Shown: piece after piece, positions 20,349-63,300 of the stretch
Numbering within the stretch: the stretch's first letter is position 1
Layout: each line of letters starts with the position of its first letter
DNA from: Tubulanus polymorphus
Lineage: Eukaryota > Animalia > Nemertea
Direction: 5' to 3'
DNA: 64,000 nt
Assembly: GCF_964204645.1 (NCBI RefSeq)
Contig: NC_134035.1
Coordinates: forward strand, 12,618,451-12,682,450
Position numbers and translations under genes: made by a program
The notes under the pieces: generated by a model
Database searches by the model: none
What the model was told of the DNA's origin: nothing
The model's input: the letters and a program-made list of their open reading frames with translations, nothing else

Positions 20349-21310
20349 ATTCGGTACATACGACCGATGAAAACGATACCCCGGTCAGAAATCGACGAGC
20401 GATGCCTATGGTTCGCATGGGTCGAGGCTTGGAACTGGTGAGGATGGGCAAACGGGACTTGAAACTGGTGCGAATGGGTCGATCACCGTACTCAAACAAC
20501 AACGACGAAGTAGAAACCGACGATGATTTATACAGAAGACAACCTCATTTCCCGCGCATCGGCAAAGATCTGGAAAACTTAGAAGAGGAGGCTCGAACCC
20601 CGAATTTACCTCGACTCGGTAAAAATGTTTACCGCCAGTTGTTAATACGAGCTCTGTTAGACGATCTACAAGCGCCACCGGCTTACAAACCTAGGTTCGT
20701 CCGATCAGCTAGAAATACCCGCTCTACCGACCACGTGGATGAACACAACGACCACCACCAGGCGGAGCTACCGTCCACACACGACAACGACCACAGCGAA
20801 GATGAAGACGCCAAGCCCGATGCAGACAGGGCTATACAATTCCCTCGATTGGGTCGCCAATTGAAAGAAGTTCAAGACATAAAGCGCGCATTCGGATTGG
20901 TTCGCATGGGCAAACGGGAACTGGACGACAAACGCGCGTTCGGTCTGGTTCGAATGGGCCGGGCGTTCGGTCTAGTGCGCATGGGCAAGAAATCGGCAGA
21001 TTCCGACACCGACGAAAAACGAGCGTTCGGTCTGGTGCGCATGGGCAAGCGCGACGAAGACGAGGCTGCCAAAAGAGCGTTCGGTCTAGTGCGCATGGGC
21101 AAACGCGACGAGGAAGACTACAAAAGAGCGTTCGGTTTAGTGCGCATGGGCAAACGTGACGAGGAAGACTACAAACGGGCTTTTGGACTAGTGCGCATGG
21201 GCAAACGGGACGAGGAGGATACTAAACGGGCTTTTGGTTTGGTGCGCATGGGCAAACGTGACGAGGCCGACGATAATAAGCGCGCTTTCGGTCTAGTGCG
21301 CATGGGCTAG
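20349..21310 (+). CDS. Myomodulin-family neuropeptide precursor, main/last coding exon (signal-peptide exon upstream, not identified)
   Basis: Acceptor ...atatttacag at 20347-20348, phase 1. The frame reads SVHTTDENDTPVRNRR-AMPMVRMG-R-GLELVRMG-KR-DLKLVRMG-R ... QPHFPRIG-K ... TPNLPRLG-K ... AIQFPRLG-R ... then 9x AFGLVRMG with mostly KR sites and acidic spacers, stop TAG 21308-21310. Gly plus basic residue is the amidation/convertase signal. The C-terminal (M/L)VRM-amide resembles mollusc/annelid myomodulins (MLRL/MLRM-amide). Confidence 0.9.
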
Positions 21311-27224: not shown

Positions 27225-29762
27225 CTATGATATGTAGTCGAAGTCTGGTTGAATCACACCCAGAAATTCTAAAGTCGTCTTAAATTCACTCAAATCAATA
27301 ATTTCATCACCTGAAAAATTGTGAAAATCTCTTTAAAAACATTGAAATATATGTATATATTCATAATGCTTGGTATCTTCGACTCTTTAAGTAAGTTCAG
27401 TAAGTTCGACTCTTAAAGATGTTGTAAGCGCCACGAAAAATGTCAAATTCATTATAAATGCGACAATAACAAGTTTACGTCGCAGATTAGGTGGTCGATG
27501 ACGTCATTTTCATGCAGACAATATTTGAGGGATTCTTTCGATAAATAAGTGGCTGTTTATTTGAAGAGGAAGCCACGTTTAGAAAGAAAAAACAATGCGA
27601 GTATCACTCTCTCGGTGAATGGTGATATAAAATCACACCTACGAACCAAAATGAGCCCGAACTGAAAACGACTTTCAGGATAAAGTCAAAACGTCGAATG
27701 AATATTAGCTCGAGGAAACATTTCTGACTTTTTTATTTTCTTTATAAGATACCGCTAGCGTCTTACCGTTCAAATCAAATAAATGGAAAAGTCTCTCGGC
27801 GAAAACTGAATCGGAGTGTTCAGCACCGTGGCCGCGCATATTGCTAAATATAGAAAATGCCGTGTCCCCGCTCCGTCTAGCCGTCGATGGGTGAGATTCT
27901 GTACGAGAACATAGGAAGAAAAATAACCATGGATGAAACATTCTCAGCCTGTTGTAACGACGATATAGAAAATCCCACAGAAAGAGACACTGAGTCATAA
28001 AACAGTTTTCTTTTTAGTTAATGATTTATTTTCGACAGCATTCCTGAAGGTGACCGTAAGAATAAACGGTAGTCTCGAAATGTCGAAAATAAATTATTAA
28101 GTAAATGAAACCTTTTCGGACTTGTTTTTCTGAGTTTGGCATTTTCTACATTATCAACACAAGACGAGCATATGAAATTACACACACACAGCACAAACGA
28201 ACGATCTTTTAAATACGGCAATTTTTTTCGTGAACGGAGGCGTGCAATCGCCGCCCGATCATCACTGGCCGAGTTCAGGTTACCGAGAATAGAGGAAAAA
28301 AGAACTTCGCCTTATTTATAATCGCTTTGACAATATTTTTACGCAAATGTCGAGCGAAATTTTATCGCGACGTCGCGAAATATTGAGATTATCGTCGACA
28401 TTATCGGGTTACGTAATTCGGTATACGGTGTAATTTTCCTACACGTCTCTGGAGACGATCACGACAAGTTATTTTGCGCTTATCTATAAGCGGGTGTAAA
28501 AGATTGTTATGAATATCATGAATCGTCTTAATTTGTCAGAGCACTTGGCGTATCTTCTATTCTCTACATGGTTGAATTTGGTATTGAACAGGCACCTAAA
28601 ATCACTAATGCCTTGCAGTGCAATTTTCATCGAAAATCCTTTCGCAACTCCGAATTTGTGCCAACCTTTGAACATTAAGAGTAGAGTTAATTTGTTAGGC
28701 CGTAGACACTGGGTTCATCTAGTCTATCCATGCTTAGATTTGAAATTAGATTTTTTTAAACGTTAGGAACACGCGATTTTGTAGTAAACTCACCACGACC
28801 CAGTTCTACAGTTGTGAGTTAGAGTTAACTCTTGAGTTAAAGTTAGTTCATTTTTAATGAGTTAACTCAGAGTCAAATCTTAACTCGCGGTTGTGTGGAA
28901 CTGGACCCAGAGCTTTCTATCCAAATCGATGGATCAATGCCAATGCACTACGCGCGCTAGACGAAGATTGGGATCTAAAGCTCCGGTGAGTTTTCTACGA
29001 ATTGTGTGTTTTTAACGTTTAAACATTGACTAACTTTATTGGTTTACATATACAGATCAACTTATTCCAATTGGTATAGAACACACGGTTCCAAGGGTTC
29101 AGCTTGACTCTAGTCGAAATAATTTCATTTCGACTGTTTTAGATCTCGAGACGAAATCTTTAGCGAGAACTCATTGAACTGGATCCAGAGGTTTGCATTA
29201 AACTATAAGTGTCCGTATTCAGGAAGTGACGTACGCGTTTCGCAACGACCAGAAGGAAGGAAACTTTCCGATCGGAAGCAGTTGGCGTGATACTCACGAG
29301 CTGACGCTGACAGGGGTTCGTTACGTCAGGGAGGTGGGAGTGAACTTCACTCCCACCTCCCTGGTTACGTGTATGCCACATGGGCAACTGAAATACCCGC
29401 GGGCACCTCGTGAAACACCGGTACGGTCCCAGGGCCTGCGGGGTATTGACATGGCTTTTCAAAAGATGAAGGAAGCGTGAAAAAATGACACTATTTAATA
29501 AATTCATGGAGTCTGACTATCAAAATAGTAAAAAACCTTTCTACGATTTCAAGGACCTATATTAGTGTATATAAACCTATTTTCACGATTTTGATGAGGT
29601 CGGTGCGACCCGCTTGGAAGTAGTTTGTATATACGTACCATGCGTATTTTGCTTTGATGAGTGGTGATAATGGCGCTCGTGGTCGGGTATATAAAACGCT
29701 CCACACTTTGATAGGCAGCAAATACAGGACAGAAGAAGAACGACTACGTGTAGACCATCCAT
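27225..29762 (-). CDS. Small secreted precursor-like protein with C-terminal EF-hand (113 aa, 3 coding exons: 29762-29639, 27898-27767, 27310-27225)
   Basis: Exon A follows acceptor ttttcattttgatattag (exon starts 29775), ATG at 29762, donor G|GTACGT. Exon B has acceptor ttcttcctatgttctcgtacag and donor G|GTAAGA. Exon C has acceptor caatttttcag and stop TAG 27227-27225. Both introns are phase 1 and the joined frame is open: MDGLHVVVLLLSCICCLSKCGA-FYIPDHERHYHHSSKQNTHESHPSTA-RR-SGDTAFSIFSNMRGHGAEHSDSVFAERLFHLFDLNGDEIIDLSEFKTTLEFLGVIQPDFDYIS. The EF-hand loop DLNGDEIIDLSE forms only across the exon B/C junction. Confidence 0.8.
28756..29022. mobile_element. Inverted-repeat element with a second MITE (about 28797-28908) nested inside, in an intron of the EF-hand gene
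   Basis: Outer arms ttaaacgttaggaacacgcgattttgtagtaaactcacc / ggtgagttttctacgaattgtgtgtttttaacgtttaa. Inner element gacccagttctaca ... tgtggaactggaccc. Confidence 0.65.
29327..29363. mobile_element. 37-bp perfect palindrome flanked by a 7-bp direct repeat
   Basis: gttacgt|cagggaggtgggagtgaa-c-ttcactcccacctccctg|gttacgt. Confidence 0.65.
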
Positions 29763-33077: not shown

Positions 33078-33667
33078 AAGATAGTAGTGATGTTTAGACT
33101 CAATTCTATGAGCCATTACAGAAGAGAGTAGTGACGTTTAGACTCAATTCTATGGGCCATTTTCAAAACTAAGATAGTAGTGACGTTTAGACTCAATTCT
33201 ATGAGCCATTACAAAAGAGAGTAGTGACGTTTAGACTCAATTCTATGAGCCATTTTCAAAACTAAGATAGTAGTGACGTTTAGACTCAGTTCTATGAGCC
33301 ATTTTCAAAAATAAGAGAGTAGTGACGTTTAGACTCGATTCTATGGGCCATTTTCAAAACTAAGATAGTAGTGACGTTTAGACTCAATTCTATGAGCCAT
33401 TACAAAAGAGAGTAGTGACGTTTAGACTCAATTCTATGAGCCATTTTCAAAACTAAGATAGTAGTGACGTTTAGACTCAGTTCTATGAGCCATTTTCAAA
33501 AATAAGAGAGTAGTGACGTTTAGACTCGATTCTATGAGCCATTTTCAAAACTAAGATAGTAGTGACGTTTAGACTCAATTCTAATGAGCCATTTTCAACA
33601 TTGGTAATACTGGTACGATTTTGGAAATGGCTCACAACAGGATTGAGTCGAAACGTTACTTAAGAGT
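33078..33667. repeat. 49-bp satellite array (about 11 copies, with 44-bp variants) followed by an inverted copy
   Basis: Unit agagtagtgacgtttagactcaattctatgagccattttcaaaactaag. Variants recur with a 191-bp period. Inverted arm at about 33619-33667. Confidence 0.92.
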
Positions 33668-39882: not shown

Positions 39883-40876
39883 AGCAGTATGGCTCGGTGC
39901 GACCCCCTGCAGTATAGCTCGGTGCGACCCCCTGCAGTATAGCTCGGTGCGACCCCCTGCAGTAGAGCACGGTGCGACCCCCAGCAGTATAGCCCGGTGC
40001 GACCCCCAGCAGTATAGCCCGGTGCGACCCCCAGCAGTATAGCCCGGTGCGACCCCCTGCAGTATAGCCCGGTGCGACCCCCTGCAGTATAGCACGGTGC
40101 GACCCCCTGCAGTATAGCTCGGTGCGACCCCCTGCAGTACAGCTCGGTGCGACCCCCAGCAGTATAGCCCGGTGCGACCCCCAGCAGTATAGCACGGTGC
40201 GACCCCCAGCAGTATAGCCCGATGCGACCCCCAGCAGTATAGCTCGGTGCGACCCCCAGCAGTATAGCACGGTGCGACCCCCTGCAGTATAGCTCGGTGC
40301 GACCCCCAGCAGTATAGCTCGGTGCGACCCCCAGCAGTATAGCACGGTGCGACCCCCAGCAGTATAGCACGGTGCGACCCCCAGCAGTATAGCTCGGTGC
40401 GACCCCCAGCAGTATAGCACGGTGCGACCCCCAGCAGTATAGCACGGTGCGACCCCCAGCAGTATAGCACGGTGCGACCCCCAGCAGTATAGCTCGGTGT
40501 GACCCCCAGCAGTATAGCTCGGTGTGACCCCCAGCAGTATAGCTCGGTGCGACCCCCAGCAGTATAGCACGGTGCGACCCCCAGCAGTATAGCTCGGTGT
40601 GACCCCCAGCAGTATAGCCCGATGCGACCCCCTGCAGTATAGCACGGTGCGACCCCCAGCAGTATAGCCCGGTGCGACCCCCAGCAGTATAGCCCGATGC
40701 GACCCCCAGCAGTATAGCTCGGTGCGACCCCCTGCAGTATAGCCCGGTGCGACCCCCTGCAGTATAGCACGGTGCGACCCCCAACAGTATAGCCCGGTGC
40801 GACCCCCAGCAGTATAGCCCGGTGCGACCCCCAGCAGTATAGCCCGGTGCGACCCCCTGCAGTATAGCTCGGTGCC
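39883..40876. repeat. GC-rich 25-bp minisatellite, about 40 copies
   Basis: Unit gaccccc(a/t)gcagtatagc(a/c/t)cggtgc-like (e.g. gacccccagcagtatagcccggtgc), highly homogeneous. Confidence 0.95.

Positions 40877-54796: not shown

Positions 54797-63300
<8,504 letters not shown>

Follow-up and report, generated by a model that had tools for sequence, protein, structure and literature searches.

Within a window of 64,000 nucleotides from the nemertean Tubulanus polymorphus (NC_134035.1, positions 12,618,451 to 12,682,450 of the forward strand), the minus-strand gene LOC141912585 encodes a product of 113 amino acids (aa) with a hydrophobic leader, one dibasic site and one EF-hand. As judged by alignment, the gene belongs to a small, conserved and previously undescribed family that is common to Nemertea and Mollusca, and leader, dibasic site and EF-hand are kept in every member that we found. 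On balance we favour the view that the product is a small secretory-pathway protein, cleaved at KR/RR, in which the conserved EF-hand domain is the working part.

LOC141912585 is an annotated three-exon gene

The original prediction, made from the letters of the window, had proposed a 'hidden' precursor in which three phase-compatible minus-strand exons join into a 113-aa frame. Exon-wise translation of the window sequence reproduced these exons (Table 1), which read MDGLHVVVLLLSCICCLSKCGAFYIPDHERHYHHSSKQNTH in exon 1, (E)SHPSTARRSGDT...LFHLFDLN in exon 2 and (G)DEIIDLSEFKTTLEFLGVIQPDFDYIS followed by the stop in exon 3; the splice sites read in the window make both introns GT..AG and phase 1. 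The product is letter-for-letter the RefSeq 'uncharacterized protein LOC141912585' of T. polymorphus (P0001), which was the sole protein returned when a protein search was made with the exon 2 residues of its 97-aa open reading frame (ORF). LOC141912585 is thus a real three-exon gene, and the word 'hidden' needs correcting because RefSeq had independently predicted the identical model. The full-length analyses described here were based on P0001, the database record identical to the three-exon product.

The other features first read from the letters were also recovered: the hydrophobic leader, a single RR, a 26-mer spacer, FYIPDHERHYHHSSKQNTH(E)SHPSTA, that carries 6 His, and an EF loop, DLNGDEIIDLSE, with E at position 6 and I at position 8. 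All 4 Cys of P0001 sit in the leader, leaving the predicted mature chain Cys-free. A stop is present in frame upstream of the exon 1 ATG, and exon 1 ends in a phase-1 split Glu codon (G/AA). Exons 1 and 2 are single copy, each matching itself alone in the 268-Mb Tubulanus genome. Within 900 bases past the stop the canonical AATAAA was not found, only variants of it. A search of Tubulanus sequencing runs showed the locus in three runs of one study, all of them with genomic contigs that include the introns.

A family shared by nemerteans and molluscs

An exhaustive phmmer search of P0001 against 1.84 billion protein representatives gave as its strongest match LOC135492287 of Lineus longissimus (P0002), at an expectation value (E) of 1.6e-25 and with 51% identity across residues 3-112. 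Proteins of Aplysia californica (LOC101857556, P0009, with the fuller form P0064), the freshwater mussel Potamilus streckersoni (P0041) and Elysia chlorotica (P0027), together with the product of a Logan contig (P0031), matched at E 1e-8 to 1e-4. Each of these four small proteins matched over a single stretch or two, and the other matches were long multi-EF-hand proteins that aligned via the loop alone. A profile search with alignment A1 returned five members, one of them new, from Lymnaea stagnalis (P0065), and a word-index search with the Potamilus protein returned that protein alone; generic EF-hand words swamp the index, and blanks in these searches are weakly informative. The original prediction could assign the protein to no family; with these searches a family of seven members exists.

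The layout common to the family is a signal peptide, the motif [F/L/Y/S][Y/H][L/I/P]P, a variable spacer, KR or RR, and a domain of ~60 aa with a single EF-hand that ends in LG[IVM]I. Alignments A1 and A2, together with the features of each sequence, show the leader, the dibasic site and the C-terminal EF-hand in all seven members, which bears out the precursor-like layout that had been proposed; no homologue without leader or dibasic site was found, and none with extra EF-hand exons. The leaders end in CGA, SGG, ASA, SDA, VSS, VSG and ASA, so that the aligned signal-peptidase sites have small residues at -3 and -1 throughout (C/S/A/V and A/G/S, respectively). The N-terminal motif follows the leader directly, and its Pro (P26) is invariant in all seven. 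The KR/RR is located 6-10 residues ahead of the invariant F59, and in the Tubulanus, Lineus, Aplysia and Potamilus proteins it is the sole dibasic pair, at the same place.

Conservation is distributed very unevenly over this layout. The EF-hand domain is the region of highest identity to Tubulanus, with 33/56 positions in Lineus and 17-23 of 53-55 in the mollusc-type members, and in A2 its residues F59, H65, F79, F82, D83, D87, I90, E94, F95, L99 and G103 are invariant. The spacer is the lowest, with identities at 1-4 of 12-17 positions (3/17 in Lineus); its length across the family runs from about 25 to about 150 residues, it is almost unalignable, and in Elysia it includes a Ser-rich insert of ~150 aa. 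Between the two nemerteans the N-terminal stretch F[YH]IP[DE]H[EQ]RH is shared (F-H-I-P-E-H-Q-R-H in Lineus). The Lineus protein is only weakly His-rich, and the mollusc-type members are not His-rich. Given the low conservation of the spacer, we therefore take its His-rich character to be a Tubulanus-specific feature. Of the three elements for which a check of conservation had been suggested, the RR and the EF-hand are thus conserved in relatives and the His-rich part is not.

Intron positions are conserved between the phyla

Proteins of four species (Tubulanus, Lineus, Potamilus and Aplysia) were mapped onto their own loci and the junctions read. In all four, intron 1 is in phase 1 and splits a Glu/Asp codon 8-11 residues before the dibasic site, and intron 2, also in phase 1, interrupts the codon of EF-loop position 4, just past D-x-N. 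Lineus retains all three Tubulanus exons, and its introns match in position and phase; outside the exons no similarity between the Lineus and Tubulanus loci was detectable. The Logan contig (L004) has an ORF that is unbroken over both junctions, an in-frame stop two codons before its ATG and ~300 bases of 3' sequence, a layout by which we take it to be the spliced mRNA of a family relative. A chance assembly of exons, or a pseudogene, is very unlikely because of the conserved intron positions and phases and this spliced mRNA-like contig.

Three peculiarities of the gene models in relatives should be recorded here. The RefSeq model of the Lineus orthologue, of 142 aa, begins in an extra exon (L003 10001-10072) 11.6 kb upstream, so that 28 residues stand ahead of the conserved Met. 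Met29 is where the conserved start and leader begin, and the annotated N-terminus is probably an upstream ATG in a 5' exon. The Aplysia RefSeq protein XP_012936474.2 (97 aa) begins at an internal Met inside the leader, and the 117-aa P0064 has the complete leader. In an older Aplysia assembly (L006), the 10 kb that follow exon 2 did not contain the third exon (DQVIERDEF...).

The Aplysia orthologue is regulated in the nervous system

The Aplysia orthologue, known as the transcript EB257711 / LOC101857556, is among 11 transcripts confirmed by quantitative PCR (qPCR) in pleural ganglia to be up-regulated 7 days after long-term sensitisation training, and FMRFamide is up-regulated together with it (PMC5733468). 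The same transcript was followed again in PMC7665899. At least one member of the family is therefore a nervous-system transcript that is regulated alongside a neuropeptide gene, and the family in turn gives this transcript a name and a testable model.

A lone EF-hand that may pair by dimerisation

Across the family the EF loop keeps its ligands D1, N/S3, D5, D/E9 and E12, together with the Ile at position 8, and the loop and flanking-helix residues that characterise the EF-hand superfamily are invariant or conservatively replaced in 7/7 members. Pfam finds in P0001 one EF-hand, at residues 76-103, with scores below the gathering thresholds (23.1 vs 25 bits for EF-hand_6; 21.2 vs 25.4 for EF-hand_1). 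Four mollusc-type members (P0064, P0041, P0031 and P0065) exceed the EF-hand_1 threshold of 25.4 bits, at 26.1-27.7 bits, and both nemerteans fall just short of it. Pfam gave no match on single Tubulanus exons, because intron 2 splits the EF-hand. Each of the seven proteins has one EF-hand stretch by Pfam, and the pairing of EF-hands within a chain that is usual in the superfamily is not found.

The best sequence matches among solved structures were to EF-hand 2 of GCAP1, neurocalcin and a hippocalcin-like protein (E 6e-4 to 2e-3). This alignment with neuronal calcium sensor (NCS) proteins spans residues 51-99 of P0001 and covers their EF1 exiting helix, the linker and EF2. We regard the match as a resemblance in sequence and not as membership, since the E values are weak. 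Atlas feature and structure matches were to generic EF-hand clusters only, with scores < 0.9.

An AlphaFold2 (AF2) model built from the seven-row alignment has a leader helix at residues 2-21, disorder at 27-51, and helices at 53-64, 71-82 and 92-101. We then consider the lone EF-hand, for which a partner is to be expected; this expectation is the reason that a homodimer is proposed. When residues 51-113 were modelled as a homodimer with Ca2+, a score of 0.53 was obtained in three runs, and the highest score among three controls was 0.01; the runs had 65% or more of their contacts in common, and the predicted local distance difference test (pLDDT) value of the partner was at least 64. The pass mark used here was attained by 21/30 solved homodimers (7/16 for those of animals) and by 0/23 single chains. 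The modelled dimer is symmetric, with an interface centred on I90-I90 (loop position 8) and on contacts between the E- and F-helices, and it would have the geometry of a classical EF-hand pair. The model suggests that the EF-hand domain homodimerises.

Processing and the favoured reading

The combination expected of a prohormone, namely a signal peptide together with a basic processing site that is conserved, occurs in 7/7 members, where the leader was identified from its hydrophobicity and from the -3/-1 rule. LOC141912585 thus probably encodes a secretory protein that is processed at the dibasic site. The original prediction had placed the emphasis on the His-rich 26-mer as the mature product, with the EF-hand as a helper pro-domain. 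Conservation points the other way: since no other part is as well conserved as the EF-hand domain, this domain is more likely to be the functional, Ca2+-binding moiety than a mere helper, and the eye-catching His-rich peptide would be a lineage-specific spacer, with the EF-hand tail as the conserved element.

We infer signal-peptide cleavage, convertase processing, Ca2+ binding, dimerisation and neural expression in Tubulanus, and propose the following working model. A cleavable signal peptide would direct the protein to the endoplasmic reticulum (ER) and be cut after small residues, between CGA and FY in Tubulanus, which, from the alignment, would expose the conserved N-terminus of aromatic residue, Tyr/His, aliphatic residue and Pro. 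In the regulated secretory pathway an enzyme of prohormone-convertase type would presumably cut at the conserved KR/RR, parting a fast-evolving N-terminal peptide, His-rich in Tubulanus alone, from a Cys-free EF-hand domain of ~60 aa. The lone EF-hand needs a partner, and a symmetric homodimer that rebuilds an EF-hand pair is, in the model, the form most likely to bind Ca2+. The domain could then be a factor of neurosecretory cells that works in a Ca2+-dependent way, in the lumen or after secretion, by analogy with the neuronal setting of the Aplysia orthologue; its role might lie in granule condensation or sorting, in carrying the N-terminal peptide, or in serving as a secreted ligand.

A more far-reaching version, which we put forward as a tentative possibility, is that the family is an ancient, unrecognised neurosecretory product of spiralians whose EF-hand dimer, loaded with Ca2+, leaves the cell; the dimer would serve as a signal in its own right or as a carrier that, like neurophysin, keeps the conserved N-terminal FY(L/I)P peptide in the granule. 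If this were true, the lasting up-regulation in Aplysia would mark a lasting change in peptidergic output.

Several points weigh against the favoured reading and have to be set beside it. The leader and its cleavage site are predicted from hydrophobicity and the -3/-1 rule, cleavage at RR is predicted from conservation of the site, and there is no amidation signal. Loop position 6 is Gly in Lineus alone and non-Gly in 6/7 members, which may weaken Ca2+ binding. The AF2 monomer is mediocre (pLDDT 66). A Foldseek search against the PDB gave no match with E < 1, and in a wide VIA-align search the top Z was 4.3, where S100A9, S100A8 and calbindin D9k (Z 3.5-3.9) stood amid unrelated helical rows, which is the level of noise. 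The homodimer may have passed through the model's memory of solved EF-hand pairs, and the success counts of the tool are weaker for animal proteins. The neuronal setting is transferred from one mollusc, and for Tubulanus no RNA support turned up, the one possible RNA run of the species giving no alignment at the locus.

Alternative readings

The reading closest to the original prediction is that the N-terminal His-rich 26-mer is the bioactive product, whether neuropeptide, metal-binding antimicrobial or toxin-like, and that the EF-hand serves as a pro-domain for sorting or release. Like the peptides of many precursors, the 26-mer lies between the signal peptide and a dibasic site, here a conserved one; six of its residues are His, and its first four residues are kept over two phyla and nine between the two nemerteans; the mytimycin precursors moreover offer a precedent for the layout of peptide, dibasic site and EF-hand extension (PMC8004829). 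Beyond those first residues, however, it is the least conserved part of the protein, sharing only F[YH]IP[DE]H[EQ]RH with Lineus and [FLY][YH][LIP]P with the molluscs; its His-richness fades outside Tubulanus, it has neither amidation signal nor Cys framework, and selection is plainly strongest on the EF-hand domain. We therefore consider this reading rather doubtful. The protein might instead stay uncleaved and be a Ca2+-binding protein, luminal or secreted, of the kind of MCFD2, Cab45 or calumenin, acting as a buffer in ER, Golgi or granule or as a cargo helper, with a basic pair that is structural. Signal peptide, EF-hand and small size fit, the general build of MCFD2 may resemble the disordered N-terminal half and folded EF-hand tail seen here, and in the mollusc-type members the basic pair lies within a generally basic stretch. 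Against this reading, the C-termini are not of KDEL/HDEL type (they end in DYIS, DYMS, NHAY, SHRF and SHNI), and the best 60 matches of the PDB sequence search included NCS proteins, polcalcins and calmodulins, with no CREC or MCFD2 entry among them. A dibasic site that is the sole one in four members, at a fixed position, also speaks against a merely structural pair, and we judge an uncleaved buffer improbable.

Two further readings touch the leader and the gene itself. The hydrophobic stretch could be an uncleaved signal anchor, which would make the product a type II membrane protein with its EF-hand luminal or extracellular. In the nemerteans this stretch is indeed long and very hydrophobic (Kyte-Doolittle mean 3.25-3.33 over 12 residues), but its 12-16 residues are typical of signal peptides and not of a membrane span, and small residues stand at -1 and -3 in 7/7 members, right before the conserved FY(L/I)P motif; a signal anchor thus seems very improbable. 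Finally, LOC141912585 might be no functional gene: its exons could have come together by chance, or be what is left of a decaying gene of NCS type. The likeness of residues 51-99 to EF-hand 2 of neurocalcin, hippocalcin and GCAP (E about 1e-3), and the lack of Tubulanus RNA, with one possible run, could be taken in that sense. Open frame, splice sites and exon structure are nevertheless kept from Palaeonemertea to Heteronemertea and molluscs, and the independent RefSeq model, the mRNA-like contig of a relative and an Aplysia expressed sequence tag with qPCR all argue for a gene, so that this last reading is close to refuted. A secretory protein cleaved at KR/RR, with the EF-hand domain as its working part, remains the reading that we favour.

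Feature map and surroundings of the gene

The features of LOC141912585 and its Lineus counterparts are collected in Table 1.

Table 1. Features of LOC141912585 in the window (residues refer to P0001), with the counterparts of two exons in the Lineus locus.
Feature	Position	Strand	Description
Coding exon 1	29639..29762	-	ATG to CAT G/GTACGT; residues 1-41; start codon, signal peptide, FYIP motif at the N-terminus, greater part of the His-rich spacer
Predicted signal peptide	29762-29697	-	Residues 1-22; within exon 1
Intron 1	27899..29638	-	GT..AG, phase 1; harbours very high-copy dispersed repeat
Coding exon 2	27767..27898	-	Acceptor CAG/AA, ends AAC G/GTAAGA; end of spacer (SHPSTA), RR, helix 53-64, EF-hand entering helix, loop positions 1-3 (DLN)
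Dibasic RR	27878-27873	-	Residues 49-50; within exon 2
Intron 2	27311..27766	-	GT..AG, phase 1; splits codon of EF-loop position 4
Coding exon 3	27225..27310	-	Acceptor TTCAG/GT; EF-loop positions 4-12 (27310-27285), exiting helix, LGVI tail; TAG stop at 27227-27225
Predicted post-RR product	27228..27872 (coding 27872-27767 and 27310-27228)	-	Residues 51-113; Cys-free three-helix domain with one EF-hand
Lineus exon 1 counterpart	L003 21682-21774		Conserved with Tubulanus exon 1
Lineus exon 3 counterpart	L003 25966-26058		Conserved with Tubulanus exon 3

The repeat in intron 1, at ~28790-28890, stands out by its summed contig depth, which is ~175,000 at 28792-28885 and ~24 elsewhere; hundreds of contigs diverge from it, with joints that 'go back 33'. 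It looks like an element of the type of miniature inverted-repeat transposable elements (MITE) or short interspersed nuclear elements (SINE), with an internal short duplication.

Tail-to-tail with the EF-hand gene, and 5.9 kb from its stop, lies the neuropeptide-precursor exon that had been noticed from the letters alone (20402-21310, plus strand). It encodes many xLVRMG-KR units, among them AFGLVRMGKR units in a 51-bp tandem array of 5.6 copies (21017-21307), and fits a precursor of myomodulin type (RMamide), as far as its repeats tell. Myomodulins of RMamide type are described in PMC8557429, in whose supplements the string AFGLVRMG does not occur. When the Lineus, Potamilus and Aplysia loci (+/-10 kb) were compared with the window by tblastx, only exon 1 of LOC141912585 matched, and no myomodulin-like gene lay within 10 kb of the gene in any of these three species; the downstream neighbour in Lineus is a lamin-type gene. 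Since no myomodulin linkage is seen near those three genes, we treat the adjacency in Tubulanus as an unproven coincidence.

Elsewhere in the window, a tandem repeat upstream of the gene (33078-33598) has nested periods of 49, 93 and 191 bp and ~11 copies of the 49-mer. A 25-bp minisatellite at 39883-40875 (39.7 copies, 94% match) gives rise to three overlapping, spurious minus-strand ORFs of 325-377 aa (GSHRAILLGVAP... repeats). For a plus-strand ORF of 112 aa at 60570-60908, which has a Lys/Asp/Glu-rich tail, Pfam gave no match at E up to 0.01; the ORF may belong to a larger gene as one of its exons.

Comparison with known systems

Small secreted proteins frequently escape notice or receive no name, and here a single-copy gene has kept its layout and both introns between nemerteans and molluscs. 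In sequence the nearest solved structures are the NCS proteins (neurocalcin, hippocalcin and GCAP), through a match of EF-hand 2 that is driven by the loop. These proteins are cytosolic, myristoylated, of ~190-200 aa and with four EF-hands, and unlike LOC141912585 they have neither leader nor dibasic site. The vasopressin/oxytocin-neurophysin precursors offer an analogy of mechanism only, in that a conserved N-terminus follows the signal peptide and a basic site precedes a conserved C-terminal part that may act as a carrier; the neurophysin fold is disulfide-rich, whereas the domain here is an EF-hand. Nucleobindin-2, of ~420 aa, has two EF-hands, a leucine zipper and a DNA-binding region. As the source of nesfatin-1 it resembles the present family in being a secreted precursor with signal peptide, convertase sites, EF-hands and a signalling peptide (cited in PMC8398477). 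It gave no sequence match in any of the searches made here.

Closer in setting is HCS2 of Helix lucorum, the expression of which rises upon noxious input, in parallel with the rise of the Aplysia orthologue after sensitisation. By published description, HCS2 (command-specific gene 2; Bogdanov et al. 1998, Neuroscience 85:637) is a molluscan precursor of neurons that has a hydrophobic leader, contains putative peptides to be cut out at basic sites, and bears an 'EF-hand motif region' at its C-terminus; it is equated with the pleurin precursor in PMC8398477. HCS2 and the pleurins bear YPRX-amide peptides, which the present family does not, and the EF-hand region of HCS2 is compared here by description only. 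In the supplement of PMC8557429, the pleurins of nemerteans, brachiopods and a scallop have (D/E)(Y/F)PRIG-RR/KR right after the leader, one intron and no EF loop; a pleurin gene would be expected to have a single phase-1 intron near the 3' end of its coding sequence, compared with two introns in the present family. No PRX-G-[KR]R occurs in P0001 or in any other member. An identity with pleurin was rejected on these grounds, that is, no pleurin peptides, two introns against one and no similarity to P0001. None of four family strings of 7-8 letters (FHIPEHQ, FYIPDHE, LFELFDIN and LFHLFDLN) occurs in the supplements of PMC8557429, and by this measure the lists of proneuropeptides given there do not include the family.

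The mytimycin precursors come closest in layout, with a leader, an N-terminal peptide, a dibasic site and a C-terminal extension that bears EF-hands (PMC8004829). Mytimycins are, however, haemocyte antifungals confined to Mytilida, and their peptide has 12 Cys (PMC8004829), whereas the product of LOC141912585 is Cys-free after the leader. Their extension has, by eye, two EF loops, for example DINRDGLIEQFE and DKDKDGTITLEE, directly past the basic site (PMC8004829, File S4); LOC141912585 has one loop, preceded by an extra helix. With no 12-Cys peptide and a different count of EF loops as read by eye, membership of the mytimycins was rejected, and the likeness is one of layout only. Precursors of convertase type rarely include a luminal EF-hand module; the combination raises the question of what role Ca2+ binding plays within secretory granules or outside cells, and beside mytimycin and HCS2 the family described here would add a third, independent case.

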